Below are positions 409-37,842 of a stretch of 64,000 nucleotides of DNA, in pieces. This DNA comes from Perna viridis (lineage: Eukaryota): NCBI GenBank assembly GCA_037379345.1, contig CM074518.1, positions 38,219,586 through 38,283,585 of the forward strand, written 5' to 3'. The notes under the pieces were generated by a model, which saw only the letters and a list, made by a program, of their open reading frames with translations, had not been told where the DNA came from and ran no database searches. Position 1 is the first letter of the stretch. The number at the start of each line of letters is the position of its first letter. A program made the translations under genes and the position numbers.

Positions 409-814
409 GGGAATGAATCACTTAAATTGTACCATAAGTGCTATACTCCCAAAGTAAATTTAGATTGAATTTTTTGGGGGTTTAACTTGAATCAGTTAAG
501 AATAAGGAGACAAAAAAATACCACTTTGATTCTGGTCAAATGCTTATCCTGTGTCAAATATCTATTAGAGATCTAACTTCAAAGCTGTATTAAGTTAGTA
601 TAGTGTCCATACTTGCACTAACTGTTCAGCGTTCAACATGTGCGGTCGTATCAAAGTGCGCCCCGCAAAGCATTTAATAGTTTAAGTAGATTTGAGTCTT
701 TGAAGTTGTTTCGAGTTCGTAGTATCGATTCATTTTGAAAGCGATAGAATATTGTATGGTTTGGGCTTAAAATGTGTGAAATTCCAAGTTTATTTCTATC
801 GTTTATCCTTTCAG

Positions 815-1137
815 AGGTCTCCGACAATAGAGGTAGTCTATTTTTTACAAACCAACACGTGTTTGTCCGTGACGACACTGGTAGCAACAAGGCCTGTCTG
901 ATGTGTTCAGTTTTTGGCAATAAAACTAAATGTGGAGATGCTAGGAAGACGTATTATAAATGTACAGCTTGTAACGTTTTCTTGTGTAAAGGTGATTCGA
1001 ACTGCTTCAGAAATTTCCATCTTCTGATGGGAGAAACCGCTGTTACGATGCATGGAAGTCGTAGAGAGTTGCGGCAAACATTAGCATCAAAATACAATGA
1101 ATGGTGCAGTAAAACTACTAAAAATCCCACCGAATGA
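815..1137 (+). CDS. Cassette 1: putative alternative terminal exon, piggyBac-type CRD zinc finger
   Basis: Acceptor tttatcctttcAG at 813-814, phase 1. HVFV..CLMC-x18-CTACNVFLCKGDSNCFRNFH plus C-terminal tail. Stop at 1137, AATAAA at 1276. Confidence 0.85.
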
Positions 1138-1972
1138 CAATATAATATCTTTGATGCCTGTCATTGTATTCTCCGTAATTATAAACATAGTAACAGTATG
1201 ATAGATAAGACCTGTACATTCTGATTTACTTTCTCATTGGACGCGTATTGAACGCATATTTAAAGTATATAGTTGAATAAAATTACTATAACTACTAGCA
1301 CTTTGAACATTTGATGCCTTGGTATAAACACTTAAATTTTGTTGTCGTTGGAATCTTCGTGTGATCAGATCTTCTCCAGTACACTTAGTCCAAAATTTAA
1401 TGAGAACATTGTCAGTGTAGATCTAAATGATACTCCTGCATTCGAAATTTAGGATAAATCGCTCTCTGGACTCGATGCATAGAGTTTGATGTTTTAAAAC
1501 AAATATTGTCGCTGTGTTACTTCGTCAATCTGATTTATATATTCCCACTCGACTATCAGATAGTAGATTGGAATCACCCCGTCAACCTGTTCGAATTCCA
1601 TCTTCATTATCATTGCTTGAGTTTCATCTCAATTATCTTTGCTTCCACTGATTGATCCACTTCAAATTTGTTTTGTGGCTTTATTTAGGTGGAACTGAGT
1701 TTGCTTGTTGTTCGATATCGACAGCCTGTTTTGTGGTACTTTCCTATTTTACTGTATGGAACGAGATTGGGGTATATATTAGAAACATCATGGTCATGTT
1801 GAATTTGCCCCTTTAGATACGTATGTTTGTTGTGCTTCTTTCTGGTATCGGTATATCATGGTGCTAGCATTGTATCAACTAAATACTTGCATTATTTTTT
1901 TTTCTGGAATCGATGGAGTATTTCGTTGTTATTCAGGAATAATTTGTTTACCGAATTCGTTTTTACTTTCAG

Positions 1973-2268
1973 TTGACCCAACCAACCTGTCGGTTTCAAT
2001 GCAACATTTATGTACTCGTGACGTCGTCAACAGATACTGTATAATGTGCTCTGTTGTTGGCAATAAAACCACCAAAAGTAAGGAGGTCAAAAAGTCGTAT
2101 TACAAATGCCAGATGTGTAACGTGTACTTGTGCAGGGGTGAATCTAACTGTTTTGCCTTGTTCCATGAGCTTCTTGGTAGCGAAGTAATGACTTTTGTAC
2201 ACGACAGGTCGACGACCAAACAGATATTGAAGGCGAAGTATCAGCGCTTGTTCCGAGAACACAATTGA
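1973..2268 (+). CDS. Cassette 2: CRD terminal exon
   Basis: Acceptor ttttactttcAG at 1971-1972, phase 1. CIMC-x19-CQMCNVYLCRGESNCFALFH. Confidence 0.85.
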
Positions 2269-2527
2269 GGTGTTAGGTAACTGCCACGTGACTTGATTTC
2301 ATGGTGTAGGGAACTCATTCTAACTGATCGACTGCATTTGTTTTGAACTACTGTGTTGTCCTATCTATATGAAAGAAAGTTGTATAGCTAGACATGGCTA
2401 GTATTCAGTTAAAAGTACGGAACTATTTCTTCAGATACTAGTGTTAGCTACTTTGCTGTCTTGTATGTGCAATGAATGATATTTTTTAAAGTTGCGCAGA
2501 TATGAGAAAAGTGCTTCTTTCTTTCAG

Positions 2528-2925
2528 ACGTTTCCAGGAATAAAAGAACTGACGAAAATCCTCAAGCACAGCACAGACTTGTGTATACTGAAGAAAAACG
2601 ATTAAGAAAATGCGTTTATTGCTATCATAAAAATGTGAAGACTTACAGCGGACATGCTGTGACGTCATATTTCCAATGTCAGGCTTGTGGAGTTGCTTTG
2701 TGCAAGACCATGCGAACTTGCTTTGTTGATTTTCATAAGTACATCGAGGAATCTGGTAACCCGATACAAATCGTTGATGGACGAAGGAATCGGTCTATCA
2801 AGTCTGAAGCATGCACCATTCCTTCGTTTAGGTCGGATGGTCGATCATCTGTTGATACTTGTACCCAAGATCCTGCACAAGAATATACTTATTGCATCAC
2901 CCTATCCTCTCCTGAATCTCAGTGA
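2528..2925 (+). CDS. Cassette 3: CRD terminal exon
   Basis: Acceptor cttctttctttcAG at 2526-2527, phase 1. HRLVYTEEKRLRKCVYC-x18-CQACGVALCKTMRTCFVDFH with a long tail. Confidence 0.85.
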
Positions 2926-3341
2926 TGTGGTCCCTGTTATTGGGTGCTCAATGAAAAAGGTTGAGGTTACATCATATTAACTTGAGTTGGCATATAAACT
3001 GTATCATAGACTTGTAAAAAGATGAAGGCAAAATGATTGTCTATATGTTGAATGAATAATGGTCAAATAGCAAGGAGTTGACATATAAAGGCGGGACTGA
3101 AATGGCGGGAAAGGGTTTTATTTTTACTTAAGTCGTGAAGACCCGATTGTACCTTCGTAGAAAATAACTGCTATACATGGAAGTTTGTCATTGACATGCA
3201 ATTATTATATATAATAGCTAGTGTAGAAACCTATACGTGTAAGAAACTCGTTAAAATAACATTAAACACATCTTGCAAGTTTTATGATTAAGCTGAGTTA
3301 GTTTGTAAAATGTTGACATTGGATCTGTTTTCCATTTTCAG

Positions 3342-3640
3342 ATCCACGAACTATAGAGACTGCAAAATCTAGCGATTTTTTCACATTCAAAGGAAACAAA
3401 CCAATATCCCTCCAGCAGTTACAATCAGTTGGTCATTTCATTGTTCCCACGTTTGAGAGAAAACTAAGACCTTGTATTCTTTGCTCTATGTGTAAAGTAA
3501 AAACGAAGTCTGGATGGCGTGTGTATACACGATATAAATGTGCTGGTTGTGACGTTCCATTGTGTACCAAACACCGAGACTGTTTCTTGATCTATCATAC
3601 CACTCTTCTTCAACACGCAGAGTCTTCAAACTTGTCTTGA
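3342..3640 (+). CDS. Cassette 4: CRD terminal exon (absent from the ORF track)
   Basis: Acceptor ttttccattttcAG at 3340-3341, phase 1. Manual translation: (D)PRTIETAKSSDFFTFKGNKPISLQQLQSVGHFIVPTFERKLRPCILCSMCKVKTKSGWRVYTRYKCAGCDVPLCTKHRDCFLIYHTTLLQHAESSNLS*. Confidence 0.85.
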
Positions 3641-3814
3641 GAAAAGGAACTTTTTGCTAATAAAAAAGCATATTGAAAAAAAAAGTATATGATAGTTTTT
3701 TGAAGATTTTTTCTGACATTTGACAGTTCTTACCGTCGTTTATGATTGTATAAATAGTGTTGGTTAGTTAATAATAAAAGCATTATTCAGTTTAACTATC
3801 GTTTTCCCTTTCAG

Positions 3815-4110
3815 AATATGCCGACAAACGATGCCATAGCCATAGAGATTTATTAGTTTGTTCATCCGTTTCTACTCTTGGAGCAATGGGTCACGTGTTA
3901 GTGAATAACCCGGATGGAAAGGCTAAGGCTTGTGTTTATTGTCTGAAAAATAATATCAAATCTAAAGCCGGATGGAAAGTTTATACTCGGAACAGGTGTT
4001 TGCTATGTGATGTTGCCTTGTGCACAAAAAACAGGCCATGTTTTTACCTACATCACAAGCCTTTATTAGACAACATAAATACATTTGGAACTGATTTACA
4101 GAAAGATTAA
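3815..4110 (+). CDS. Cassette 5: CRD terminal exon
   Basis: Acceptor ttttccctttcAG at 3813-3814, phase 1. GHVLV..CVYC-x18-CLLCDVALCTKNRPCFYLHH. Confidence 0.85.
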
Positions 4111-5049
4111 CTTATTTGGAAGTTGATAGTAAATTCAGTCTAAGCATGCTTAAGCTGTATAATTAGTCTTTTGTAGTTGCTTATTGTGATCTGATTGATA
4201 TTTTTACACTTTACGAACGGTCATCACTTTTAAAATTTTGTATATGTAAGAAATACTTGACTGATAAGCTAGAAGACGGGTTGATACAAATATGGCTTGT
4301 AAGTCTTGTTACTTGATCATGTGAATTCACGAGAATGGGTGAGAGTTCAAACTCCAATACTAAAGCTTACGAAGTGGTTCTTCATAGAGTAAAGACTACA
4401 ATTTTATCAATGAAACTGTCTTATGCACAAATGTTATTTTAAGAGTATGACGCTTCAAAATATTTTACTTTCTGTGATAGAACGATTAATCGAGGGGTGG
4501 GGGGAGGGGGCATTTTTTCTATGCAATGAGGGGAGAATAGGTCTGTCGGCTCTTGTTTGATCATAGTTCAATATCACTTCTGAAAAATTGACATTATAAC
4601 TCTCAAGTTCACGCATGATGGTTGTGATGGTTGTTTTACATTATTTACTACAATGTAAATACTACGAACCTAGATGAAAACCATACTCATATCTTGCAAA
4701 TATAATGTTCAGACATTGTTCAACGACCATTATCTTAAATCACAATAATACGCTGAGAGCAGGAAGTCGTCTGCTTTTTAGTGCTCCTCATCCATATGTT
4801 AAAGAATTAATCGAATGGAATTATTTTTTTAAAATTGACTTCAGTTTCGGTACAATAGTTTCATTTTTGTTGTGATAAGTACTTTGTGGAATAATTATGG
4901 ATCATTTTCATTGAGAATTCTGAGTAGTGTTGCTTAGTAGTATAATGGATTCTTTCGGCGTTCAGCAGCCACTTCCGCTCAGTATTATTAATAGTAAGGG
5001 TTTTACGTAACTTATTTGTTACACAAGACAACTTCAATAAAGCTAAATT

Positions 5050-5262
5050 TACTATTGCAAACTTATTAATTTTTGCGGGCTACTAATTTTCTCTATTTTT
5101 GCGGTGGACAGATAAGGAATAAAATAAGGACCCGCGAAATTTATTTTTTACCCTATAAAACGTTAATCATATGTGAAACCGCGAAAGATCATACCCGCGA
5201 ATATGCTCATTTGACAGAATCCGCGAACATTAACAACCGTGAAAATTGATACGTTTACAGTT
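5050..5262. mobile_element. Degenerate MITE-like repeat with internal CCGCGAA motifs
   Basis: Imperfect ends (tactattgcaaac ... gtttacagtt), ttttgcgg motifs on the left and repeated ccgcgaa on the right. Confidence 0.45.
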
Positions 5263-5503
5263 ATCTTAATAATATTCTCAGAAGTATTGACTGCATTTTT
5301 AAATTGGTGACGCTATTGGTAATGTGAAATATTTACCTTTGTAACTACATGTCCCATTTTATCGTACGGTTCCAGACCCGACTTTCATCTGCCTCTTTTA
5401 CTGTTTGTTTTCATCTGATTTTACCAAGTTGAGCTCGCTAAGTCAAAACAGAGAAAACATTTCTGTTTACAGTGTTGATACCTTTTTGTTTTCTTTGTTT
5501 CAG

Positions 5504-5802
5504 ACCAATCTGGCCAAAGTATGGGGACTCTGCCATTTTATCCATATACGGGACAACGAATCGATAGTGCATCATGGGAAAAACTGAAATCTTTAGGCCA
5601 TTGTATCACACCGACAGAGGGTCGGAAAGTTACTCCTTGTGTTTATTGCTCTATAAATTCTGTCCGTTCTAAGACAGGGCGTAAAACCTACACAAGAAAT
5701 AAATGTGGGCTTTGTGATATACCGCTTTGTACAAAAAATAGAGACTGCTTTAATCTTTTCCATTGGTCGGTATTGGAGAAAATATTTGAGGGTTCAGGAT
5801 AG
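5504..5802 (+). CDS. Cassette 6: CRD terminal exon
   Basis: Acceptor ttttctttgtttcAG at 5502-5503, phase 1. GHCIT..CVYC-x18-CGLCDIPLCTKNRDCFNLFH. AATAAA at 5910. Confidence 0.85.
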
Positions 5803-6849
5803 ACATAACGAATGGTATTACTGCTTTTGAACAGTCATTTGAAAAAAAAAAAATGAAATGTATATGTATAAATGTCTGTACAATTTGTATTGGGGATATA
5901 TCGGTTATAAATAAAATTAGTTTGTTTTTTTTTTCTCTTGATATGATTATTTAACCAGATATTATAGGTTTATTGTTAACGTCATTTACCAAGCCACGTG
6001 TTGATTTCTTGGGTTTGAGCCGGGAGGAGGATTGTTAGGATTTTTCCAACTGTCCTATGGGTCTTGTCAAATGATCAATGATGGAAAATTGCATCGATTA
6101 ACCTGTCCGATTCATAATCTTATGAAGCCATACCTCTAGATGCAAAAATAATTTAATAATCCATAAGATACCATGAAAACTTCCCCATTCATAAGGAGAT
6201 AACAACAGAAACATTTCCATACCCATAATGCATCAAGTAGTTTTACCCCACTCATTAGATTCGGACATATATTGCTATAGCCTAATCCGTTCATCTTTTT
6301 GTTTCACTTTTCTGTAACAGATTTATCAGCTTCTACTGGAGGGAATTCTTAGATATAAGGTATATTGCTTTTGCATGATGACTTTTTTTACTTTGCGTCG
6401 CCTTTACAGATCATTGCTTATCTACTTCCTGTCTGTCCTATGACTTAATTTGACAGAATTTGGTTACAAGGGGCTATCTTAGCACGATGTTACGTTTAAC
6501 TTCTTGTTGAAATTCAGTGTAAATGTTGCTCTACAGTCTTGTCAAAGTGTGTAGGTATCAGGCGTGCGAAGATTTATATGGCTTTGCCGAAAGGCAAGCA
6601 TGTATTGCATGGTAGTAGGTGTTTCAAGGACGCGAAGGATCTAACAAGGTCAGCTTTCTTTTGAGTAATGGCTATTTGCAAACATTTGACATGTGCTGAT
6701 AGTACGACTATATTTTCCTAGATATCTTTTTAGACTTTGTCGATTATCTTGGAATACTTCGCCCAATTTAGAATACTTCAGTTCAAAATATGTAACTTGA
6801 TTTTAGACGTTTTCTTGGTAATTTGAAGTTGGTACGTTTTACCTTTCAG

Positions 6850-7133
6850 GGATGATTGCTGTCCCATCAGATATAGATAACAGGCTTGCTAATATACAAT
6901 TTTGGAGGAGTCTTGGACACAATGGCGGCGACACCGAGGGAAGGAAAGTTCGTCCCTGTAAACTCTGTAGCATGCAAAATATTCGATCAAGTTCTGGACA
7001 GAAGGTCAAAGTTCGCCATCGTTGTCTGGCTTGTGACGTACCTCTCTGTATGGGACAGAGAGATTGTTTTTACCATTATCACCAATTGCTGTTTAGCACA
7101 AAAAGTGCTGAACCGTCAGTTGACATGAAGTAA
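6850..7133 (+). CDS. Cassette 7: CRD terminal exon
   Basis: Acceptor ttttacctttcAG at 6848-6849, phase 1. CKLC-x18-CLACDVPLCMGQRDCFYHYH. Confidence 0.85.
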
Positions 7134-7305
7134 TTTAAGTGAGTCCATTTAGGTTACGGTCGACTGGCGAACATTTCGGACCGAAAACCATATGAACGTT
7201 TTTAACTGTATGAATGGATGATCATGTGTATTTTGTTGTCATGTTGATGAAAATGGTCGTCTGTTTAAATCAAATGTTTACGATCCTCTCAATTTTTCCT
7301 TTCAG

Positions 7306-7568
7306 ACACGGATGGATTTTCCCCAGATTACAAAGAAAGATTGGAAAATTTACAATCTTGGCAAAATCGTGGACATATTGTTGTCGATACTGATGACAAA
7401 AAAGTTCGAATATGCAAACTTTGTAACATGAACAATATCCGTTCTTTGTCAGGGCAGAAAATCAGAGTTCGTCATCGTTGTCTTGGGTGCAATATTCCAT
7501 TATGTGTTCGTCAAAGAGACTGTTTCTATAAGTATCACTTAGCGATTTTTAATCAGTCAATAAGTTGA
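7306..7568 (+). CDS. Cassette 8: CRD terminal exon
   Basis: Acceptor tttttcctttcAG at 7304-7305, phase 1. CKLC-x18-CLGCNIPLCVRQRDCFYKYH. Confidence 0.85.
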
Positions 7569-7758
7569 GGTTTTGGTTATTTTTGGACAAGATGTCCTCG
7601 TCTGAATGTCAAAGAACAGTCTTACTACCAGTTGCGCATGTTGCAAACGTTATATAGACTTTTGAGAAAGATTATTGTATTATTTCATCATTCTTTGTTG
7701 TCAAGACGTTTGATTAAGTCATCAAAACTTGTCATGGATCCGTTTTTATTTTTTCCAG

Positions 7759-8045
7759 ATTTGGTACCCAAAATCTACATCAACCCACGTTTAATGACAA
7801 CAAAGGATGATGCTTTGAGAATTTTATCTATTCAGGGTCATACGATAATTGATACAGAAGAAAAACGGCTAAAACCCTGTGTTGTGTGTGCCGAGCGTAA
7901 CGTTCGATCGCATCGGGGCCATTGTATACGAATTCGCCATCAGTGTTCTAAATGCCGAGTAGCTTTGTGTATTGGATATAGAGATTGTTTCACCGCTCAC
8001 CATCAGTCCTTATTAGATCCAGATTGCAAATCAGATATCATTTGA
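7759..8045 (+). CDS. Cassette 9: CRD terminal exon
   Basis: Acceptor tttttattttttccAG at 7757-7758, phase 1. CVVC-x18-CSKCRVALCIGYRDCFTAHH. Confidence 0.85.
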
Positions 8046-8175
8046 AACGTTGAAGTAGTCATTAATACGAAACAAATTGAGTATTTGGATTCATCTTTTT
8101 TTTTTATTTGGGCAGTTACGTATTTTAGTTTTTTCTTCACAAGGATTGAAATGTTCCTTTTGTCTATATTTTCAG

Positions 8176-8438
8176 ACATGCAATATCTCGGGGAGAGTAC
8201 TCGTTGTTCCAAGGATAATCGAGCTTACTGTCTCCAAGCTCTTTCCTTATATGGTCACAGAATTGTCGACACTCAAGGGCAAAGACTTCGAGCGTGTGTT
8301 GTGTGTGCTAGTCGCAATACTCGATCTAGATTTGGACTTAAAGTTAGAATAAGGCACCAATGCTCGAAATGCGGAGTTGCATTATGTGTTGGGAAACGTA
8401 ATTGTTTCTCAATCTACCACGATTCTCTTTTACAATAG
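8176..8438 (+). CDS. Cassette 10: CRD terminal exon
   Basis: Acceptor tctatattttcAG at 8174-8175, phase 1. CVVC-x18-CSKCGVALCVGKRNCFSIYH. AATAAA at 8504 and 8517. Confidence 0.85.
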
Positions 8439-9781
8439 AATGAAGACCGATAAATAATGTGTCAAAAATTTTTGTACAGTGTGTATATGTTATCATAATC
8501 TCCAATAAATATTGTTAATAAAAACTGTGTTTTTATTAAAACAAGTGTGGATTCTGAAAGATTAAGGAATTCATTTTCTTGACTTTTCTATACGTTCAAT
8601 ATTGAAATACATAGATTGCTATCTTCTTTACTTGTATTTATATTTATTTGTTTACTTTATTTATGTTTGTAAGTATTGGGTTCTCTCGGTGGTCTATAAA
8701 TCCGGTTCAGTGTGTTGGACTTGTATAAAGCAGGATCTGTTTAATTTTCCAATCGTTGTCGTCACATCTGCTATTAGGATATCCAGTAAATTTCAAGTTA
8801 GATCTAGTTTTAATTATATGATCAGTGGTCACAAGAATCACCTAAGAGTCATGCTGGAAGTGATTTTTAAATATTTTGCTAAGAATTATTGAAACTCAGC
8901 AATGGTTCCATGTAATCTTTCTTCCAGTGGCATTCATTTTAGAATGATATCGACATCACTTGAACCTCAAATATCTTACAAGGGGTAGTTTACGCAAGAA
9001 AAAAATAATTCTGTACCTAAAGCATGAATACTATGTCATTTATTCTATTGAAATACTTCTAGTACCTAATTATAATTTTGCTTAACCTCTATTTAATGAT
9101 ACAAAAGGTAACGATGATAGTTTAATCTCGTACGTAGATAGGAGACGCGAAAACTTCAAACATTCTCAGCTTTGAAAAAATGTGAACGGAGGCTTACATT
9201 ATGAAGGGCTATTGCAACTTTTTACCACAATTTTGTTTCGAAACTTGAACCACTGCTTAGTGTTCTAATTCACAAATTACAAATTGTGATGCTTTGAAAC
9301 TACCGGACTTCAACAAGTAAAAAATCTTTTAAAGTCCCCAAAACACTGAGGCTTCTTTTGTATTGTACATGGTAGAACGATTTCGTAATGGATGTGACTT
9401 CCTATTTCGATAGTTTGGGTTTTCGTGTTCTTGTATACTATTACTTTTGGATTTAGATCTTCCTGTGATTTTAATTCAAATGTTGCGGATGAAAGGTCAC
9501 TCCATAAAACAGCAAAACAAAATATGCAATATTGATATGATGGATAGTTTTGTATTAATGAAACAATTTGAAAGATTATGGAGTTATGAAAATTTGCTAT
9601 TTAAGCGTTGTCTTGAAATACCGAGACCAAGAAACGTAATAACTAATGGCTCGAGGGAAACCATTACATATATACCAGTGCACTTTTCATATATCTTATA
9701 TGTTTATTGAATCAACCGATGTATTATTGACTCTTCAACAGTCGTGAACAAGGATTGACGCCACATTATTTTATCTTTCAG

Positions 9782-10065
9782 GGTTTGATCCATTTGTATT
9801 ATCTTGCTATGCGACTGATGTGCAACAGAGAGCTAAGAAAAGAGAACAAACACAACAGCTTGCCAATCTCGGGCATGCTGTAGTTGATACGTTCAGTAAA
9901 AGGAAGAAAATATGTGTACAGTGCCTTAAAAACAATGTCCGTGCACCGTCAGGAGAAAGAGTTCGGGTGCGACAGCAGTGTGGGACATGTAACGTTCCGC
10001 TTTGTGTTGGATTCCGAACCTGTTTTGTCGATTTTCATAAAGCCCTTCTGGACAAACATTCTTAA
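9782..10065 (+). CDS. Cassette 11: CRD terminal exon
   Basis: Acceptor ttattttatctttcAG at 9780-9781, phase 1. CVQC-x18-CGTCNVPLCVGFRTCFVDFH. AATAAA at 10404. Confidence 0.85.
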
Positions 10066-11043
10066 CAATTTCGAGGTTTTAGAGTCATTTCTGTTGTCGA
10101 TATGTTAAAAGAACGTTTGTAATGGATCTGATGTACTAAATACTAGGAATATGTGATTTACACGTAGTTCTTCTAGACAATCATAAACCTGGAGAGTTTT
10201 GAAAAAAAATATGTATATTCCATCATGTTTCTTTTTTTATCTGAGTATTGGATTGGTTATTTTATATAGTTTTAATGAACCTGGCCAATTTGTAATAATT
10301 TGATTTTAACTTGCTTTGGCCGAATTATTGGAATTTGCATTGAATTACGTATTCATAAAGGCTTGCATGTTGTAACTCATTGCTTCTTTTTATATTCGAA
10401 TGGAATAAAAACTCATGAGCATGATGACATTGAAGTTTTTTTTCATGTCAAAGAGTTTCAGTAGATTGTTAGTGTTTAACCTAGGAAGTCCTTGGGTGAA
10501 GGATCTTAAACATAGACACAACAATTGTTGGCATTCTTCATGTTAAGGGCCGAATTTTTCAGAAATTTTTCTCATTGTGGATTATATTTTTAGGACTGGA
10601 TTATTCTTCATTTGATTTTGTTCTGAACCGAAATCATGGGGAAAAAATGAAATAGAATATTCCCGCCTATATGTCGTAATCTCCCTCAAGCTGGATGTTT
10701 TCATAGTGTTCTTTTTTCCGGTTGTTTTTTCTTCTTGTGCGTCAGTTGAACGCGTATTTTTGATGTCCGTTCCTTTTCACACAATCTCTATATTATAGTT
10801 TATTGTGTCGTTGATTACTGATTTTTCTGGTCCTATGTCTGTTAACTGCTGTCATCTTAACATTTAAGATGTATTGGATTTTGGCTTTGAATAAATCCGA
10901 TTTCGTTAGTTCTCGTAACCATAGCTACCCTTGTCAATTGCTGGTTGTGAATAAAACTGTATACAATTATTTCTCCGATTCTAACAGCAAACTTCAACGA
11001 TTATGAGTCGCTTAACGGAATAAATGTTTCTTTCTCCTTTCAG

Positions 11044-11345
11044 ATTTACCAGCCCTTCAACAAATGGCATCAAAAACCGATGGGTTACCGATTGATCTTG
11101 AACAAAGGAAATACTTTGAGCTTGATCATAGACATTTTATGACATTTTTAGAAACCAAGGGCCATATTATCGTAAATACCATTGACTGTAAATTAAAACC
11201 GTGTAAATACTGTTCTAAGTACAAAATAAAAACGAAATCCGGATATCTAGCAAGGACCAGAAACAAATGTTATCTATGTGATGTTCCTTTGTGCACGAAA
11301 AATCGTGATTGTTTTTACCAGTACCACAAATCATTTATTCAATGA
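11044..11345 (+). CDS. Cassette 12: CRD terminal exon
   Basis: Acceptor tttctttctcctttcAG at 11042-11043, phase 1. CKYC-x18-CYLCDVPLCTKNRDCFYQYH. AATAAA at 11390. Confidence 0.85.
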
Positions 11346-11419
11346 TGTAAGATGGATGGAAGTACGGTGTTATAACTTATTTTCTCATTAATAAACACTC
11401 ATCCATTGTTTCCTTGCAG

Positions 11420-11697
11420 GCTTGCACGATATTCCTTTCCTATCGTCTGCTATGGTGGAAATGAACCAGATATCCCATGATTCCATGCGCGAACATAAGC
11501 TTGTTCCGCTGGAACACAATCGTAGGAAGAGATGTAAATATTGCCAAATACGGCGGGTGAGAACAGCTGCGGGTGGGACATCTGAAACTGCCTACCATTG
11601 TCTGGCTTGCCAAATACCTTTGTGCCCCGGAATTAGATCAGGAAGGGATTGTTTTATCAAATATCACAAGGAATATATATTTCCCAGTCAAACTTAG
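11420..11697 (+). CDS. Cassette 13: CRD terminal exon
   Basis: Acceptor ttgtttccttgcAG at 11418-11419, phase 1. CKYC-x18-CLACQIPLCPGIRSGRDCFIKYH. AATAAA at 11979. Confidence 0.85.
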
Positions 11698-12725: not shown

Positions 12726-13009
12726 GTAACATGGATGGAAAGCCGTCACAACTACATCAATTAACTTACAGTTCAGCCAAAACTGGTATACCGGGTCATA
12801 ACGTTGTACCGACTGATGGACGGAAACAAAAACTATGTAGATATTGTCGCGCTTATGAGAAAAAGTCACCTTCCGGTTGGAAAATCTTGACGCGCTCTAA
12901 ATGTGAAACTTGTAATGTTCCGTTGTGTCAGGATGTTCGAACTGAGAGAAATTGCTTTAGATTGTTTCATGAGGAATATGTGTTTGGAAAACAATTCAAG
13001 TTTATGTAG
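12726..13009 (+). CDS. Cassette 14: CRD terminal exon
   Basis: Acceptor tatttcttcttgcAG at 12724-12725, phase 1. CRYC-x18-CETCNVPLCQDVRTERNCFRLFH. Confidence 0.85.
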
Positions 13010-14144: not shown

Positions 14145-14431
14145 GTAGTGGTACCAGTTCAAATGTACAGGTCATTCCTCAGAAAAATCCTCCTCCGTTG
14201 TTACGAGTAACATCTAGTCTTGAAGGTCATGAGTTAGTCCCGAATGATGGTTTCAAACAAAAAATATGTCACTTTTGTAGGATGACTGGACAGAAAACTG
14301 TTTCTGGCTGGACAGTTTTGACTGGAACTAAGTGTTCATTGTGTAATGTTCCACTTTGTAGGGGTACAACCCGGCCTCACAGAGAGTGCTTCAGATTATT
14401 TCATGAAAGGCTTCTATCCCAGAATCAGTGA
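14145..14431 (+). CDS. Cassette 15: CRD terminal exon
   Basis: Acceptor ttcttttattttcAG at 14143-14144, phase 1. CHFC-x18-CSLCNVPLCRGTTRPHRECFRLFH. Confidence 0.85.
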
Positions 14432-14745
14432 TTGGTGTACTAAGACTAGTTATTCAAGACATATTGCAGATCTTTATAGTCAGAATGGATGTAGTTGATA
14501 GAAAACAAACTGCATGAATGTAATGTATTTACGTGAATTGGCTAGTAATAGAACTTTCAAGCGACTTCGAACATAATGTTTCAGCATTATAGATAAAGCT
14601 TTATTTGTGTGAATGAAGTTAGTGGAAATACACATATAGTTAATATCCAGAAAATTATTTGGATATTGTGGTATCGTCAATAGTTATGTTATCGTTAGTG
14701 AAAAAAAAACAAACATATATTACTCCTTCATTGTTCTCCTTTCAG

Positions 14746-15032
14746 TTGAATATTTGTTGACAGAAAAGAAAGCGAGTTATCCTCTTCCGGGTCAAAGGTT
14801 ACAGTCGCTATTAGAACTAACTCCGAAGGGACACCATTTGGTTACTACGGAAGGGTATAAACAAAAGGCATGTCGGTACTGTTCTTTAATAGGAAGGAAA
14901 ACCTCTACAGGGAACACTATTTGGACTCGTGTCAAATGTTCCGTCTGTGATGTACCGTTATGCCAGGAGACAACTAGAACACAAAGACAATGTTTCAAGT
15001 TGTATCACGAAAAAATTAGTTACTCGGATTAG
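14746..15032 (+). CDS. Cassette 16: CRD terminal exon
   Basis: Acceptor ttgttctcctttcAG at 14744-14745, phase 1. CRYC-x18-CSVCDVPLCQETTRTQRQCFKLYH. Confidence 0.85.
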
Positions 15033-16212: not shown

Positions 16213-16412
16213 AAGCGGATGTTTTAATGCATAGGTTGGTGCCGAATGAGGGACACAAGCAACGGAAATGTAAACAATGTAAAAGAAATCGGGTCCGGAC
16301 CAAAAAAGGATGCCGTGTTAATACAAGATTCCACTGTGACTTGTGTAACGTGCCACTATGTCGGGAGCGTAACTGTTTCCAGCAATTTCATCAACAATAT
16401 CACTTTCAGTGA
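16213..16412 (+). CDS. Cassette 17: CRD terminal exon (shortest)
   Basis: Acceptor tttatactttgcAG at 16211-16212, phase 1. HRLVPNEGHKQRKCKQC-x18-CDLCNVPLCRERNCFQQFH. Confidence 0.85.
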
Positions 16413-16777: not shown

Positions 16778-17037
16778 GCTACACAGTGTCAGAGACTTCA
16801 TTTTGGTACTCTTTTGACTCCATGAATTCTGGTATTCCTGGACATAAAATTATTCCAAACGAGGGTCATAAACAAAAGAAGTGTAAACAATGTCAGAGAA
16901 GTAAGAGGAAAACTAAATCTGGTTGGCAAGTAGCGTCAAGGTTCCGTTGTGAGAGTTGTAATGTTTCTTTGTGCCGTGATAATTCTTCTAAGAGGGGCTG
17001 TTTTAGACAATATCATGAGGAACTTGGCTTGATATGA
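16778..17037 (+). CDS. Cassette 18: CRD terminal exon
   Basis: Acceptor ttgacgttttgtAG at 16776-16777, phase 1 (a second in-phase cAG lies at 16785-16786). CKQC-x18-CESCNVSLCRDNSSKRGCFRQYH. Confidence 0.8.
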
Positions 17038-20705: not shown

Positions 20706-20944
20706 AAGAAAAAAATGGAATGAGTTGCATGGTTAGCGGAAATGACGAGAAACATCATCATAGACTGGTTCCATTAGGGTTTGGAAAGCAGAGAACCTGC
20801 AAACAGTGTAGGATTTTAAAATCTAGAACCCGAACCGGACTCCGGATATTTACCAGATACAAATGTGAAGCATGTGATGTGGCTTTGTGCAATCCCTTTT
20901 CCTCTGACCGGAATTGTTTTTTCGCATACCATCAGCATTCGTAA
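20706..20944 (+). CDS. Cassette 19: CRD terminal exon
   Basis: Acceptor cctgtttctttgtAG at 20704-20705, phase 1 (TAGAAG tandem acceptor). CKQC-x18-CEACDVALCNPFSSDRNCFFAYH. AATAAA at 20943, 21240 and 21379. Confidence 0.85.
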
Positions 20945-22738: not shown

Positions 22739-23274
22739 GTGCTCGTCTTCCAGCGAGAGGTGCCAGATTGTCTAGACAAAGGTACCCGCCTAGAGATAAC
22801 CGTTTCTACTCCCACGCGCTCCAAGAACAGACAAGCCAAATAGGGCAGTATGGGCAAGGTTGTATGGAGGATAGTCGATGGATTAATAGAAAGCCTTCTG
22901 GTGTAGGTGGTACTCAAACATCTTACGACTCGAGTCGTTTGCAAGTTTACCAAAATAGCCAAAAGGTCGATGGTGGTATCTCCAGACCTTCCGAAAATAA
23001 ATCTTACATACATCCAGTCCAGTTGCAGGGTCTAGATAATTTGCCTGGTCATAAAATTGTCCCGGTGGAAAAGAAGACTGGGATGCGGTGCCTTTATTGT
23101 CAGATCCACAAAATAAAAACTCCTTCCGGTTGGAGGGTCAAAACCAACTATAAATGCGAAACGTGTGGTGTACCCCTCTGTTCCAAAGAAGTAACTGAAC
23201 GGAATTGCTTTAGATTACACCACATAGAGATGTTTGGCGATACCATTCTTGAATCAGAGGAAAATCCGTTTTAG
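22739..23274 (+). CDS. Cassette 20: CRD terminal exon with long N-terminal linker
   Basis: Acceptor ccttcctcattgtAG at 22737-22738, phase 1. About 100-aa Q/S/G-rich linker, then CLYC-x18-CETCGVPLCSKEVTERNCFRLHH. Confidence 0.8.
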
Positions 23275-24121: not shown

Positions 24122-24507
24122 ATAGCAGCATTTCTAAGGAACCTTCACCGTTCTTGTTTGGAGACACAGACAAAAGGGAAGACGTCATACGAAATTTGCA
24201 CCGGAACGAAATCCCAGAAGACACTATTCACGGCGAGCAATCTCAACGAAAATCGTTACAAAATTTACCATTTTCCAATATGCCCGAGGGTCATTCCCTT
24301 GTTTTGGTAGGGATCAGTGAGAAAACTGGGTGTGTGAAACAAAAAGACTGTCGCTACTGTTCGAAGTACAGTGTAAAAACTAAAAGTGGATACACTGTCC
24401 GTACACAATATAAATGTTCCGGATGTGATGTTGCACTTTGTTCTGGTGAACTTACCGGTAGGAACTGTTTCGTTCTGTTTCATAACGAACTTTTCCTTGG
24501 CGTGTAG
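24122..24507 (+). CDS. Cassette 21: CRD terminal exon
   Basis: Acceptor ttttgacctttcAG at 24120-24121, phase 1. CRYC-x18-CSGCDVALCSGELTGRNCFVLFH. Confidence 0.85.
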
Positions 24508-24956: not shown

Positions 24957-24978
24957 ATTTATTTATTTGACGTTACAG

Positions 24979-25331
24979 GACAATTGTACTACCCAACAGG
25001 AAATAGACCAAGATTCGTACAGAAGAAACACTTGCCATCAGATGATATTCTCGGACAAAGCTCGCTTCATTATTCGTACCCATTTACCAAGGAAAATCTG
25101 CCAGAGGGACACAATCTTGTCCCTATTCCAGACAACAGGAAGAAAGACTGCAAATTCTGTCGTCGTCATAATATTAAAACAAGGAGAGGATATTCCGTAC
25201 AAACTCAATACAAATGTGCTGTCTGTGATGTGGCGTTATGTTCAGGGGTGTACAATAATAGGAACTGTTTTGTAGACTTTCATAACGAAACCTACATGAT
25301 CCAAAGAAACATTTCACAAACAGACATGTGA
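24979..25331 (+). CDS. Cassette 22: CRD terminal exon
   Basis: Acceptor tatttgacgttacAG at 24977-24978, phase 1. CKFC-x18-CAVCDVALCSGVYNNRNCFVDFH. Confidence 0.85.
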
Positions 25332-27016: not shown

Positions 27017-27393
27017 ATGGCAGTAACGCTGTTTATGGAGCTCATGATTTTGGAGTAGGTGGGGATGGCTTACCTGGCCAAATACACAATGCACATCTGT
27101 TGTCTCTATCTGAAATTCAGAGAGATCTTCCGATAACTTTTTCCAATTTCCCGGGAACAAATCCGATGCCTTTACCGGAATTTTCAGGGGGCCATCGGCT
27201 TGTATTGACGGATGGAAGGAAATTACGGAATTGTCATTACTGCGAACAGCATTGTGTCAAGACTAAAAGTGGATATACCACACGGACTAGATATTATTGT
27301 CAAAAGTGTAACGTGCCATTGTGTGTTGGTCGATACAGGAACAGAAATTGTTTCGTTGATTATCACAATACGATGAACCAAATAAATGATTAA
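27017..27393 (+). CDS. Cassette 23: CRD terminal exon
   Basis: Acceptor tttgactattacAG at 27015-27016, phase 1. CHYC-x18-CQKCNVPLCVGRYRNRNCFVDYH. AATAAA at 27445. Confidence 0.85.
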
Positions 27394-28721
27394 TACAATA
27401 CAGTAACACGCTACAAGTTTTGTTTCAAGTGATTTTTAAAAGGGAATAAAATTGATTTGAAGCCTGTGTAAAATGCATGTACAATGTTGTAAAATCGGGT
27501 CGTATGTTTCATCGTGATCAAATTATATGTTCTCTCTGTGTGGTTGGGTGACGTCAATAACTTAGTTTTTACTGACAGGAGACATAGTGTGTGTGGTTAG
27601 TTTGGGGTTATTAATCGAATTTGTCAATGATGTTGTATCGTTGTTTACAACTAATTTTTGCGCAAGTAATCGATCAAAGTAAATATTTTGAAGCAATTTT
27701 TTAAAAAGGAGAATGGAAACGAAACAATATTGGAACAAAAAAAAAATGTCAGAGACAAATTGAAACTGAAAATGATTCAAGGAGGCAGTTTGAAATAAAT
27801 TGCCAACACATTAGGCACGTACCTACTCTAACCTTAAGTAGCTACACCACTGAATTGAATATTATTATAAGAATGTCTGAATGGAATTATTTGCCTTTTT
27901 GCAGGCTGATTCTTACATCTGGCTTGAACTATCTGACCGGCGCAAAGAAGGATTCTATTGTCTTTAAATTAAATAAAAATATCTACTAGTATTATAGGAC
28001 TTGAATCACAACCAATCCAATTGACAAAATAAAACGGAGACCATAGATTTTAGGACTTCTATTTTGCACCATGACATGTCAGGTAGTATTCCAAGCTCCG
28101 AACAGCGTCATCTCTCTTCGAGAGAAAACGAATATCTTCCGCTGCCTGGGGCTTGGCAGTATTCCCAGTCTAACAATTGATTTTAATGGTATATCAGATA
28201 AGATTTGTTTTCTTGTACCAATAAATACTGGATTTTGTTTCCGATCTCTTAGTCCGTTATAGGCAAGATAATTAATCACATGAAACAAACAGTAGGGACG
28301 CAGCACTGCGTCCGGCGATTGGACCGCCTATTGTTGAATTTTATTTATTCCGGGCAATTTTTGTGTAAAATTGGAAAAAAGGGCTGGACCCTTTTCAAAA
28401 TTTCTGGATCCGCTCCTTAACTATTGGATTTAAGAACCCACGAATTAAATTTCTGATCATTGTACGTCTACAAATAAACAGACTGTGCAATCGAGTATGA
28501 TAATGTCTGTTTATTGTCACTTTCGGTTTGCTCATTTGGGCGTCAAGAATTTAAAATAGACAAGAACTGAAAACTGCGATGTCAAAAAGTCAACCCTATT
28601 TATAAAATTACGTGACAAATCACACACACAAAAAAGCCAATTGTCACATACAAAAAAACATTGGTTTGGTTGTTCTGTTTATCATTTATTCATTTTAATA
28701 CGGGCGCTTTGTTTCTTTCAG

Positions 28722-28996
28722 AGTATATACAGAGATTGTTTGACCAGCCTAATTTAGGTCCCATTCCTATTGGAGATATGTCTGACCACCCATTGGTCCA
28801 TATCAACGAGAAGCGCACGCAAAGGGACTGTAAATACTGCCAGATCCATAAGATAAAGTCAAAGTCAGGGTTGCGTCTAAAGACTTTGTTTAAATGTGCA
28901 AAATGTAACGTGCCCCTATGTGCCGCACAAAATACGGACCGACACTGTTACGTTTTGTTCCACAATGAGTTTATATTCGGATATTCTCATATGTAA
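28722..28996 (+). CDS. Cassette 24: CRD terminal exon
   Basis: Acceptor ctttgtttctttcAG at 28720-28721, phase 1. CKYC-x18-CAKCNVPLCAAQNTDRHCYVLFH. AATAAA at 29083. Confidence 0.85.
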
Positions 28997-31116: not shown

Positions 31117-32662
31117 AGAAGATATTGCATGACAAACATCAGCCTGGCGCACAGTTAAACATCATAAGACATAAATATTGTGACAACAAGCATGAACATG
31201 TTTGCACATGCTTCCATGCACGGTCCAGCCTTATCATGAACCGCCGAGTTGCATTTTTTGTTTGAGAATCCCTGATTCATGGTGAAATCTTTGACGTTTT
31301 ATTTGAAGTCCAAACATATAAAGACAAATGCAACAAAAACATGTATGATTTTGTATGTACAAAAGTAAATCTCAAAACCTTAAGTCTTTTCATCAAAACG
31401 TAAGGTAGACTCCATACTTTACATGTATCTCTGACAAATTGTCCGGAAAAGATCCGTATTATACAATTTTAGTACAATTAATATACTGTACTAATTTACA
31501 TAAAGGGCTGGGGTTTAGCAATGAGTGGCAGAGATGTAAAGCTTTGAAATATCGAATATCCCCTTTGTGCAGGATTTTCTCCTCTCCGACAAATGTTCAG
31601 TCATTCATACTTCTGTTGAATTAATGCATGTCCTGATTATTAATGAACCATGTTGCTAACTAACGATTAAGGTCAAATTGAGAAGAAATAAAAAAACATT
31701 CAATTGTAACCTTATAACCTCTATTACAAATATAGATTTCAATCCATTTTTTAGGGGGGGGGGCTTTGTCAGTACGCCTCTTTATTTTCAAAACGGCAAT
31801 TTTATTAATTAAGAATGTGTGTAATGAGTTGCCTTAGATCTGTGCTTCAGTCTTGTTTGTATCCTAACCAAAATGGTTAAAACTTATACGTTTATCTCTG
31901 CAAGAATGTCTATCAAAACATCAAACCATTTTTGACGTTGAAATAGTGTGGTTAGTAGACACACGTATATTGTGGAAATACAAAAATGGGAAAAATAAAA
32001 TAATTTTTTAAATGGTCAAATCTTGTTTCCCCCATCCTGTTTAGCACTATGAAGTGAATGTTTTGTGCGGAACAAGGTATCACCTACAAATCTACTACAT
32101 ACCACTCCGTTAGCTTATTACATGTAGCTTTACTATGCTGGGCGTGAAACAAGTCATAACGCATGAATATTGCCACATCATTTCCGGTTGTACTGTACTA
32201 ATTTGGATGAAGGTGAGGGGTTGTTATTGAGCATGGCTCTGAAATTACGATTATACCATATGCGATGGAGGCGGGAGCTGTGAACAAATCTGCGAATTTG
32301 ATTCAAGTTCAGTGTACCGATTTGAATAAAGAGGCAGAGTTTAATATTTAGTTTGGTAATAGCATTAAAACTGATGTAACGAAAATCTGTGTACACTAAC
32401 ACCATACATAGGAGTTTCAATACATTTTGAATCTTTTAAGCCAACGACCTGCTTTGACCGAACGTACTATTCCCTCCTAAAAAGAGGCACGGTTGAGACA
32501 GGTTTCACTGTATTACTTTTCTGGAACTGTCTGATTCTTACATGGGTCTATACTTAATAGAAACGATAGAACATCCCAAATCGATTCAAAGTTGGAAGAT
32601 TTTTTTTATTTGTATCCCCAAAATGTGAAATTTTTTGGTAAAAGTTTGTTCTACTTTTTCAG

Positions 32663-32988
32663 AATTAACCACTCTACAGATGATAAACATGGATGATATA
32701 ACAGTATTACCTTTATCCGACTCCAGAACTCGATGGAATATGAATAGAAAATTTCACATACCCGGGCACCAAGTGGTACCCATTGGAATGGCAAATGAAC
32801 AGAGGGACTGCAAGTACTGTCAAAAGAAAAAGATTAAAACGAAACGTGGATGGAATGTGAAAACTAAATTTAAATGTGATAGGTGTAACGTAAATCTGTG
32901 TTCCGGTGACATGACGTCACGAAATTGTTTCGTTTTGTTTCACGAAGAGTTTGTATTTGCTGGTAATCAGAATCCTTATACCACATAG
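32663..32988 (+). CDS. Cassette 25: CRD terminal exon
   Basis: Acceptor ttctactttttcAG at 32661-32662, phase 1. CKYC-x18-CDRCNVNLCSGDMTSRNCFVLFH. Confidence 0.85.
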
Positions 32989-34699: not shown

Positions 34700-35880
34700 T
34701 GCAATACTTGACATCTATTTTCGACGACCACTTTCAACCTTATAGCTAAAGTACAACATATTCATTTTCCTGTTGTAGCACAATGCCTCAGGAAACCATA
34801 GTCCATCATTAGCAGTTAGAAACGTCTTGAACTGTTGACTAAATCGCGGTAACAATGTCAAATGGTTCGATGAATATCCAACGACATAAAGGATTTCGTG
34901 ACTATCAACGCATATGCCGTGTGGCCATCGAATTTAGGAATTTACAATATTTTCCCCCTGTTGTGGAGCAACATGTGATTTTGTCATTTTTCCAATCGGT
35001 GTAATATATCCTGTCTTTGAATGTAGTTATGTAATTAACATGATCAACATCCACACTCAGAGTGTTCTAAACAATACCCGATTCATCGATCATCGCAACA
35101 CCCTTTCCTTTTACTATTACATTAAGTCACCCGCTTTGGTAGGATACTCCATAGCATTCTCCGCCAGGTCGGACTTTCTTTTTGATCTTCTTCTTTGGTG
35201 CTGACTAAGATTATTAGAACTTTATCTTTATATGTAACAGCAATACGGTCCACATCAATTACAGCTACATTGCAAACGGAAGGCTTAGCAGGACCGAAAA
35301 TGTCACACACATGGTGGTCATCTTCGGTGTACTTTGTTAGCTTGCCGTTGTACTCAGTGATGAACAATCTACCATCTCCTGACAAAGCGCACCCGATGAT
35401 AGCCTTGTTGCTAGTACCTATTTGTATATCAATGACTTGTTTTGAGCTTAGCTCGATTTCTAGACTAGATATATCAATTTGAGCTTGATTTAAGTCAGCG
35501 TGTCTGTACACTATACTAGGTGTCGTATCCATCACCTGGATATCACCAAAAACTTTGGATATCTTTGATTATAGATGAAATAGATGAAATAAATTTTCAC
35601 CTGAAACATGAATAACTTTGATACGTTTAGTGTATTTTTGAGACAGTCGATATTTCTTGTAAAAGTATTTCTCATTTGTCGAACAGCTTAAAATAATACG
35701 ACTTTGGATGCCGATTCTTGAATATGAATGAGAGAGATTTTAATTTGTGTGAATTCTTCATTAAAGGACCTCAAACTGTCTAGTATTGAGGGGCACTGTG
35801 CTCGTCAGTCTTTGTATTTTTCTTCAATATCCTCTAAAAGTTGTTTTTCTAGTCGGTCTAGATGTTTATCTAATTGTTCG
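34700..35880 (-). pseudogene. TRIM-like / NHL beta-propeller pseudogene, antisense within the array
   Basis: ORF 35122-35535 (IIGCALSGDGRLFITEY..VAVIDVDRIAVTY) continues after frameshifts as ECYGVSYQSG*LNV..IDESGIV*NTL..DRIYYTDWKNDKITCC and WPHGICVDSHEILYVVGYSSN..DGLWFPEALCYN. These are NHL-like repeats with in-frame stops. The 5' limit is approximate. Confidence 0.75.
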
Positions 35881-36033
35881 AGGACATTGCAAACTTATTT
35901 TTAAAATCCTGGCCGTTTTGGCCCTAGGAACATTTTCGATAATACCATTACCATGGTTTTCTGGACGGTCTCTTAGATGTTTGGTAGGATGAGGATCGAT
36001 TTGTACCACTAGCAAAGTTTCGTAATAGGAATG

Positions 36034-36207
36034 AAGTTTGGGTAGAAGTTGATAACAAGAGAGACAAAGTGTAAAACATGGTCAGATTAACAAGTTTGGG
36101 TAGAAGTTGATAACAAGAGAGACACAGTGTAAAACATGGTCAGATTAACAAGTTTGGGTAGAAGTGGATAACAAGAGAGACACAATGTAAAACATGGTCA
36201 GATTAAC
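36034..36207 (+). repeat. 58-bp tandem repeat, 3 copies
   Basis: aagtttgggtagaagttgataacaagagagacaaagtgtaaaacatggtcagattaac. Confidence 0.95.
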
Positions 36208-36897
36208 TCTGTCTAGTACAATACAATTTTATATCCTTCATTTTGTTTATGTTTGTCTGGTGTTATTTCATTATTCTACTTTTACTTGCGCAAACGGCCA
36301 AGGCATGTTATAAATCTTTCCCTATAATTTCAATTTTGGATCAGTCGATTTTAAGCCTAAATAGCGATTATTTGGGTGTCAATTTAGCGTTCATATACTT
36401 TTAGTTATTCTATCACTTTTGTCAAATGAAATATGCGAGATTTTTTTAACTTGTTACATAGATAAGGGTCGTGGATGTCGCGTGATGTCAGCGATATTTC
36501 AATATCGACCCCCCTCCTCCCCCCCCCCGAAAAAAAATGGATTGCAATCAATTATTTTCTCAGTTTTGCACAAAGAGTAGTGGTCCTACACCGGACTCTC
36601 CTGCGAACAGTGTTGTGTTAAACTTTACCCCATGCCAATTTCTCTCGCTTATGTAGTTCCAAGGCTCATTTTCCTGTACGATGGTTTTAATGTTCTATGT
36701 TCATGCTACGGTAAAATTTTTGGTCACTACTCATGCATTACCTATAACATATCATCATTCAATTGTTTTTCACTGACCTGAATTTTTCCCTAAGACAATG
36801 ATGCATCGAGACTGTTGCAACTAAATATGTAAACAAAAACAAAACTAAACAAAATGTATACTGTCGTAATGTGATATCGCCTATGATTTCAATACCT

Positions 36898-37069
36898 GCA
36901 GGGCCGGATCCAGATACTTTGAAATGGAGGGGTACCAGCCGAGTTCCTCAGAAAAAACGGGTGTTAGGACATTATTTGCCACTTTTTTTTAAAATTTTAT
37001 ACGAGAAAGGACAAATTTTCCCATTAAAGGGGTTCTAACCCCATGCACCCCCCTATGGATGCGCCGCTG
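36898..37069. mobile_element. Short MITE, ggcggatcc-type TIR family
   Basis: caggggccggatcca ... tggatgcgccgctg. Internal ccagccgagttcctcagaaaaaa is shared with 23628-23655. Confidence 0.6.
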
Positions 37070-37636
37070 ACCTCAGCATTCAAGATGTCATTGATAATAA
37101 GTTTGAATCCCCCATTTTCTGTTCAAATAATTATTTCTTTTGTTTTGTCCTTAATTGAAAGATTGTAGTACCGTTAAAATAACGACAATGTAGCCTGTTT
37201 TAACCGAACCATGAATAAACCGAAACCTAAACAAGACACTTTTGGTATTCCCTTTATTTAAGAATTGGCAATAATAAAAATTTTGTCTATTGAAAAATAA
37301 CAAAAATTATCCATGTGCATATTGTTTATTGCGCGAAAGTCAAAAATATTTTGTACATGTACCTATTAGGAGTCCAAGGTCAGGTCCAGAGGTTTTGAAA
37401 AGGGGGTTAATTGAGGAGGTCTCAGCAAAAATGAGGCTTCGGACTATTATTTGCCCAATTTTGCGTAAATGTTGCACGAAATTAAGAATGTTTTCGAATA
37501 AAAGGGGGTCCAATCCCCTGCATTCTTTACTAGAGTCCGTAGAATATAACAAATGTTATGCAGGGTCTGCTTGTTTGGTCTTGAAAATGATCTCGCCCTG
37601 AAATTTATGAAATATCTGTCATGGGACGTTAAACTA

Positions 37637-37664
37637 CAATCAATCAATCAATCAATCAATCAAT
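37637..37664 (+). repeat. (CAAT)n microsatellite
   Basis: About 7 units. Confidence 0.9.
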
Positions 37665-37842
37665 GAGTTGTATACTGGTATTTGAAAACCAGGCATCTGA
37701 GCGTCTTTGGTAATCGGAGCTACTTGTTTCCGGTATAAGTAGTAAAATGGTATACCCGTTTTGTGTTGCTATGCATGCGCATTAAGCGGTGACATTTGAT
37801 GATAATGTTATATGATTAATATTTACAACTTGTTTGTTGCAG

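Follow-up and report, generated by a model that had tools for sequence, protein, structure and literature searches.

The Drosophila gene longitudinals lacking (lola) joins constitutive 5′ BTB exons to ∼20 alternative 3′ zinc-finger exons (isoform number as cited in PMC11426971) through one common donor and in one phase. The mod(mdg4) gene yields >30 isoforms, which share a common BTB part and differ in their alternative 3′ exons, most of which carry one zinc-finger-like FLYWCH domain, itself associated with transposases (PMC11426971, PMC13490949). BTB factors that come in many isoforms with interchangeable DNA-binding tails have been regarded as characteristic of the TTK-type group, whose BTB with its N-terminal FxLRWN motif is arthropod-specific; in molluscs, a published survey found no TTK-type BTBs (PMC11426971). 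An oyster transcription-factor survey counted 171 BTB genes and noted BTB gene clusters, but did not mention the architecture described here (PMC12111275). Our literature search found no paper describing BTB genes with alternative PF13842 (zf-Tnp_2) exons in molluscs. Here we analyze a 64-kb stretch of the Perna viridis contig CM074518.1 (positions 38,219,586 to 38,283,585; hereafter the window, which contains no N) together with 100 kb upstream of it, in a 723-Mb genome. The window holds 26 cassettes, each composed of a linker and a cysteine-rich zinc-finger domain. These are very probably mutually exclusive 3′-terminal coding exons of a single BTB/POZ gene, joined to its constant part by one phase-1 donor.

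The locus shares with lola a BTB domain in constitutive exons, alternative 3′ finger tails, one donor and one phase. It differs in that lola has a TTK-type BTB, C2H2 finger pairs and reported trans-splicing, whereas cis-splicing is sufficient here. With mod(mdg4) it has in common a shared BTB part and 3′ exons that mostly carry one transposase-linked, finger-like domain; however, mod(mdg4) relies on trans-splicing, has cassettes on both strands and uses FLYWCH, whereas the cassettes here are co-oriented and carry PF13842. The same exon chain and the same junction (...GGFR followed by G/NN; a slash marks the cut) are found in Mytilus californianus LOC127705185 and LOC127705183, automatic gene models named uncharacterized protein. 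The isoforms as such are already listed in NCBI gene models of other bivalves. The notable part is the design, a gene like lola or mod(mdg4) outside arthropods, with a non-TTK BTB and transposase-derived fingers.

The constant part lies on the plus strand, 12 to 16 kb before the window begins. L010:5648-6880 matches PF00651, the BTB/POZ domain (E = 1.8e-10), and three coding exons could be mapped with M. californianus isoform X18 (L010:4530-4655, ∼5651-6877 and ∼7389-7740). Exon 3 ends with GGC TTT AGA G/GTAGGC at L010:7740, which is window coordinate -12260, and its donor cuts after the first codon base, a G, and hence in phase 1. All 31 cassettes that we assign to the gene are found downstream of this donor on the same strand. 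The FxLRWN motif is absent from the exon 1 translation of the BTB gene. Judged from its sequence, the gene would work like lola and mod(mdg4) but is not a member of their clade, as its BTB lacks the TTK motif.

A six-frame regular-expression scan located exactly 26 copies of the cysteine-rich domain in the window, all on the plus strand, with first Cys codons from 895 to 38019. An alignment of all 26 cassettes reveals eight invariant ligand positions (His, CxxC, CxxC, LC, C(F), His), and the region N-terminal of this block does not align among them. PF13842, the zinc finger at the C-terminus of piggyBac-type transposases, is matched by 23 of the 26 at E ≤ 1e-3, and each of the seven cassettes that were scanned individually scores 27-32 bits against a curated cut-off of 24. 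A profile built from the 26 cassettes matches the piggyBat transposase 9c0f at residues 519-574 of 578 (E = 1.3e-4), ligands included. The fingers thus share with the C-terminus of piggyBac-superfamily transposases the ligand pattern, including the upstream His, and a significant profile match. In the transposases, however, the finger sits on a DDE core, whereas here a single finger sits on a BTB protein, in dozens of diverged copies. We detected no transposase-like open reading frame (ORF) and no homologue match for a DDE core in the 164 kb. By analogy with the role of the piggyBac cysteine-rich domain, the fingers are probably a DNA-binding module.

Five further cassettes upstream bring the gene to at least 31, of which 29 carry the piggyBac-type finger. 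Three of the five are plus-strand finger cassettes just 5′ of the window. The fourth is a C2H2 cassette with a strong phase-1 acceptor (AG at -6049, L009), 99 codons and a Pfam C2H2 match, and the fifth is a very basic cassette of 49 codons, also with a strong phase-1 acceptor (AG at -4031, L009). Between 38183 and 64000 no cassette was found by regular expression, by homologue tails or by a scan for acceptor plus ORF. A search for further arrays across the genome scored only 49 candidates, nearly all of them at this locus, and gives no family size.

We placed contigs from four public runs, belonging to four studies, on window positions 2450-8449. Fourteen small runs from the same organism contain 70-88% of the words of this segment, and the four chosen contain 75-88%. 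Letters from the end of exon 3 (L010:7713-7738) appear as loose ends before 2526, 5502 and 7757. The final AG of exon 3 equals the acceptor AG, and the true exon starts are therefore 2528, 5504 and 7759. Exon 3 is thus joined to cassettes 3, 6 and 9. Other contig pieces begin at 3813, 6848 and 7304 with 25-26 leading letters from outside the stretch, and contigs also begin at 3340. The acceptors marked by RNA for cassettes 3 to 9 are accordingly 2526, 3340, 3813, 5502, 6848, 7304 and 7757, and in all seven the G of the AG occupies codon position 1 of the finger frame, that is, phase 1.

Coverage falls to about zero at 6050-6249. Contigs end at 3683-3684, ∼20 nucleotides past an AATAAA at 3659 (cassette 4), and at 5895-5927, near an AATAAA at 5910 (cassette 6). 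The spliced contigs, the coverage gap and the ends at AATAAA together indicate that the runs contain mRNA. Cassettes 7 to 10 are closely spaced and have no AATAAA of their own, and some contigs reach all the way from cassette 7 to cassette 9, so that a cassette can lie in the 3′-untranslated region of one upstream of it.

Several points weigh against taking these contigs as a complete demonstration. The run records do not state RNA, so that the nature of the molecules is deduced from spliced contigs and uneven coverage. At 3813, 6848 and 7304 the identity of the leading letters with exon 3 is deduced from their length. Contigs also cross several acceptors unspliced, and read-through or intron-retaining RNA is hence present. 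Nineteen acceptors (cassettes 1, 2 and 10 to 26) are predicted and not observed; their use, like the way in which a cassette is chosen, is something we infer.

An additional donor (AAAAG/GTTGAG) is located at 2959/2960, 34 nucleotides past the stop of cassette 3. Two GT..AG joints, in runs X8 and X6, connect it to the acceptors of cassette 4 (AG at 3340) and cassette 5 (AG at 3813). It follows that cassette 3 can be an internal exon, with a downstream cassette in the 3′-untranslated region.

A sequence-only reading of the window had held that all 26 acceptors share phase 1, while admitting that they had been picked by eye with knowledge of the frame. For every cassette we indeed found a YAG whose G is the first base of a codon in the finger frame, with no stop between it and the domain. 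Phase-1 AGs account for ∼40% of the AGs upstream of the domains, so that one is nearly always available, and the pattern could in principle be an artefact of frame-aware picking, or the cassettes could be independent small genes or transposon relics. We scored every AG in the 306 nucleotides upstream of each domain with a generic model that does not use the frame (pyrimidine tract, Y at -3, purine preferred at +1, penalty for upstream AGs; weights from general knowledge). The best AG is in phase 1 in 22 of the 26 window cassettes and in 25 of 29 when the three cassettes just upstream are added. Compared with the per-cassette share of phase-1 AGs (about 0.40), the Poisson-binomial P for the window is 1.9e-6, and the worry about selection by eye is thereby answered. 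Among the RNA-marked AGs, six of seven are ranked first by this model and the remaining one second. On the minus-strand BTB gene that adjoins the locus (described below), its best AG is in phase 1 in six of eight cassettes.

A second model, trained on the seven RNA-marked sites (leave-one-out for those seven), places a phase-1 AG on top in 27 of 29 cassettes. These include 813, 1971 and 37841, the acceptors that had been proposed as junctions 814/815, 1972/1973 and 37842/37843. This model may profit from homology between duplicated acceptors, which tempers its result. Most acceptors share ...YTTTCAG/R. A scan of the 76 kb from exon 3 to the end of the window returned 42 AGs with a score ≥5, 23 of which belong to cassettes. 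Behind the remaining 19, the phase-1 ORF has a median length of 14 codons, the exceptions being the C2H2 cassette (-6049), the basic exon (-4031) and a doubtful 45-codon ORF at 31265.

The linkers, measured from exon start to first Cys, span 56 to 335 nucleotides and always have a length of 3n+2. They had been described as unrelated, and they do not align with each other. Their phase has therefore been kept despite indels and not merely copied with the duplicated cassette. The frame-blind preference for phase 1 at P about 2e-6, the spliced RNA contigs, the lack of own start codons at any cassette exon start, the lack of a transposase DDE domain and the annotation of the orthologues as isoforms of one gene all speak against an artefact, independent genes or relics, and we give that explanation next to no credence. 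The idea of interchangeable exons sharing one donor is borne out by the phase-1 donor of exon 3, the letters of which abut 2528, 5504 and 7759. With one donor for the whole array, an acceptor has to be in phase 1 to be usable; the uniform phase is an expected consequence of the design and unsurprising in itself. The earlier observation is confirmed. As a statement about all 26 cassettes, it is backed by the seven RNA-marked acceptors and by blind scoring in 22 of 26, whereas 19 acceptors are predictions, two of them (cassettes 20 and 23) uncertain.

Comparison with other bivalves points in the same direction. The BTB ORF is 68% identical to M. californianus uncharacterized protein LOC127705185 isoform X18, and the next matches are many multi-isoform BTB proteins from scallops, oysters and pearl oysters with PF13842, C2H2 or HTH_psq at their C-termini. 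The 15 annotated LOC127705185 isoforms (numbered up to X40) are identical up to ...NPLGGFR and then diverge. The first residue after this point is G (7), D (4), E (2), V (1) or A (1), exactly the residues coded by GNN, as predicted by a phase-1 junction after G. The rule holds in 26 of 27 isoform groups from Mytilus, Pecten, Argopecten, Crassostrea/Magallana, Ostrea and Saccostrea. If the residue at which isoforms first differ is one that GNN does not encode, they have G, D or E as the last residue in common. On these protein sequences, the G/NN phase-1 junction holds across the family.

One-to-one orthologous cassettes in Mytilus are 55-84% identical to those found here, and the array must therefore predate the split from Mytilus. 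Mytilus tails match the predicted exon starts or the spacing for cassettes 5, 10, 14, 15, 16, 18 and 24. The distances from junction to Cys, in residues in Mytilus and here, are 43 and 40 for cassette 10, 36 and 37 for cassette 14, 41 and 41 for cassette 15, 39 and 42 for cassette 16, 35 and 35 for cassette 18, and 45 and 36 for cassette 24. The first residues match too in several orthologue pairs, and the tail of cassette 18 aligns from residue one at 16777. A search with the 26-cassette profile returned ORF calls on unspliced contigs from the source species and related ones. All that these show is that, in relatives as well, the finger frame reads F-Y-[LI]-S-[DG] across the pyrimidine tract and CAG.

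In the mechanism that we favor, one promoter would drive the BTB exons, and the exon 3 donor would pair with one of at least 31 downstream acceptors. The split codon would become G+NN (Gly, Asp, Glu, Ala or Val), and the remainder of the cassette would supply a linker, which varies from cassette to cassette, then the cysteine-rich zinc finger of piggyBac type and finally the stop, the mRNA ending at a polyA site past the chosen cassette. The product would be a constant BTB oligomerization module with one of many fingers. The cassettes would have arisen by duplication, and selection would have maintained their frame despite the indels in the linkers.

The neighboring BTB gene, a paralogue, is located 100 to 40 kb before the window (L018-L013) on the minus strand and diverges from the first. 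It has eight zf-Tnp_2 cassettes of its own and two cassettes of other kinds, its exon 3 ends AAA G/GTAGGT with a phase-1 donor too, and it is the orthologue of Mytilus LOC127705183/LOC143082833.

The constant exons might instead be supplied in trans, as in Drosophila mod(mdg4). The contigs are unable to separate cis from trans, and the neighboring divergent gene has the same phase-1 donor after G, so that cross-joining would stay in frame. All 31 cassettes, however, are downstream of the donor on the same strand, and trans-splicing is not required; each of the two BTB genes has its own array on its own strand, and the exon 3 loose-end letters that were read come from the plus-strand gene only. 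We thus regard a supply in trans as quite improbable and retain cis-splicing from a single donor.

The acceptors and coding parts of the 26 cassettes are given below; each coding part runs to its stop, and 'both' denotes the generic and the trained model.

815..1137, plus strand: cassette 1; AG 813-814, top in both; PF13842 match.
1973..2268, plus strand: cassette 2; AG 1971-1972, top in the trained and second in the generic model; another AG, 1935, is in phase 1 too.
2528..2925, plus strand: cassette 3; AG 2526-2527, RNA contig with the last 26 exon 3 letters in front.
2959..2961, plus strand: extra donor after cassette 3, AAAAG/GT; GT..AG joints in RNA contigs.
3342..3640, plus strand: cassette 4; AG 3340-3341, with a GT..AG joint onto this AG and contigs beginning at 3340.
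3815..4110, plus strand: cassette 5; AG 3813-3814, GT..AG joint and contig starts with 25 letters from outside the stretch; a Mytilus tail has the same start and spacing.
5504..5802, plus strand: cassette 6; AG 5502-5503, exon 3 letters in front of 5502 in an RNA contig.
6850..7133, plus strand: cassette 7; AG 6848-6849, contig start with 26 letters from outside the stretch; top in the generic model.
7306..7568, plus strand: cassette 8; AG 7304-7305, contig start with 26 letters from outside the stretch; top in both.
7759..8045, plus strand: cassette 9; AG 7757-7758, exon 3 letters in front of 7757 in an RNA contig.
8176..8438, plus strand: cassette 10; AG 8174-8175, top in the trained model; the alternative 8114 is also phase 1, and Mytilus spacing favors 8174.
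9782..10065, plus strand: cassette 11; AG 9780-9781, top in both.
11044..11345, plus strand: cassette 12; AG 11042-11043, top in both.
11420..11697, plus strand: cassette 13; AG 11418-11419, top in both.
12726..13009, plus strand: cassette 14; AG 12724-12725, top in both; Mytilus orthologue with 79% identity.
14145..14431, plus strand: cassette 15; AG 14143-14144, top in both; orthologue spacing.
14746..15032, plus strand: cassette 16; AG 14744-14745, top in both; orthologue spacing.
16213..16412, plus strand: cassette 17; AG 16211-16212, top in both.
16778..17037, plus strand: cassette 18; AG 16776-16777, top in the generic model; 16791, preferred by the trained model, is in phase 1 too.
20706..20944, plus strand: cassette 19; AG 20704-20705 or 20707, weak tract, both phase 1 and best in-frame; orthologue with 78% identity.
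22754..23274, plus strand: cassette 20; candidate AGs 22737 or 22752, weak, both phase 1; long linker.
24122..24507, plus strand: cassette 21; AG 24120-24121, top in both.
24979..25331, plus strand: cassette 22; AG 24977-24978, top in the generic model.
27017..27393, plus strand: cassette 23; phase-1 candidate AG 27015; a stronger out-of-phase AG at 26926.
28722..28996, plus strand: cassette 24; AG 28720-28721, top in both; orthologue M. californianus isoform X18, 69% identity.
32663..32988, plus strand: cassette 25; AG 32661-32662, top in both.
37843..38183, plus strand: cassette 26, the last of the array; AG 37841-37842, top in the trained model and second in the generic one, behind the phase-0 AG 37906.

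Acceptor scores are modest for cassettes 19 and 22. For cassette 22 the top AG of the trained model is 24854, which is in phase 1 but lies 5′ of an in-frame stop. Two cassettes count against a fully uniform array. Cassette 20 (Cys 23089) has no convincing acceptor, only the weak AGs 22737 and 22752, and for cassette 23 (Cys 27232) the better-looking AG, 26926, is out of phase. The linker of cassette 20 measures ∼110 residues, and the region is single-copy in the genome. The phase might thus be uniform for most cassettes only, some (20 and 23) decaying or giving truncated, finger-less tails. Consistent with this, the strongest tract upstream of cassette 23 is that of 26926, from which the frame opened by a phase-1 donor stops after 20 codons, and a decayed copy of cassette 2 (about 13-405) shows that cassette death occurs in the array. 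However, both cassettes keep the eight zinc ligands and a frame open for >160 codons, phase-1 AGs are found inside both open frames, and the context of 27015 resembles the acceptor of the paralogue cassette 22. We consider partial uniformity possible although unlikely, and prefer phase-1 use throughout the array.

Further comparisons did not settle the acceptors of cassettes 23 and 26. The linkers do not align between cassette 23 and its paralogue 22 or between cassette 26 and its paralogue 14. When the ORF of cassette 23 was used as a protein query, the sole match was an ORF call on two contigs that are unspliced and colinear with the genome, and this match is silent on splicing. A micro-exon of cassette 23 starting at 26928, with a GTGAGG donor, was considered and rejected, since its length gives the wrong phase. 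On the minus strand, a 130-codon ORF beginning with ATG (22621-23013) runs antisense to the long linker of cassette 20, which is relatively rich in GC; the ORF matches no Pfam family, and its DNA is single-copy in the genome.

Taken more broadly, we lean slightly toward the view that bivalves independently evolved a 'one BTB, many DNA-binding tails' system, with domesticated piggyBac fingers, a non-TTK BTB, 30-40 tails per gene and a phase-1 G/NN junction conserved in many paralogous genes and in at least three bivalve orders. That molluscs show the same design with another BTB type and with a finger derived from a transposase points to convergent evolution, and the locus points to large-scale domestication of the piggyBac DNA-binding module. 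With such a junction in common, cassettes could pass from one paralogous BTB gene to another with the frame intact, and even cross-splicing between the two divergent neighbors would stay in frame. The phase-1 G/NN junction offers a simple rule for annotation; standard ORF callers miss the cassettes. The array also provides ∼30 natural variants of the finger on a common scaffold, and their DNA specificities could be compared.

The 5′ end of the array bears traces of duplication. The segment 708-1282, which contains cassette 1, is 88% identical in DNA to a segment 817 to 253 bases before the window, and the acceptor contexts of the two are identical; from this similarity, cassette 1 and its neighbor immediately outside the window appear to be a recent tandem duplication. 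The dead cassette at 4-405 is a decayed duplicate, 68% identical to 1795-2199 (the cassette 2 region), and its ORF has lost the Cys pattern. Positions 409-690 are a dispersed repeat inserted between cassettes; at least 38 copies, 72-78% identical, are spread over many chromosomes.

Cassettes 25 and 26 are separated by a 4.8-kb gap, in which the minus strand contains ORFs of 72 and 148 codons (34718-35568), one with a sub-threshold NHL-repeat match (E = 0.004); these may represent part of a nested gene. Beyond the final cassette, a tandem-repeat block at 41000-42600 is open in several frames and contains GNFWG...-like ORFs.

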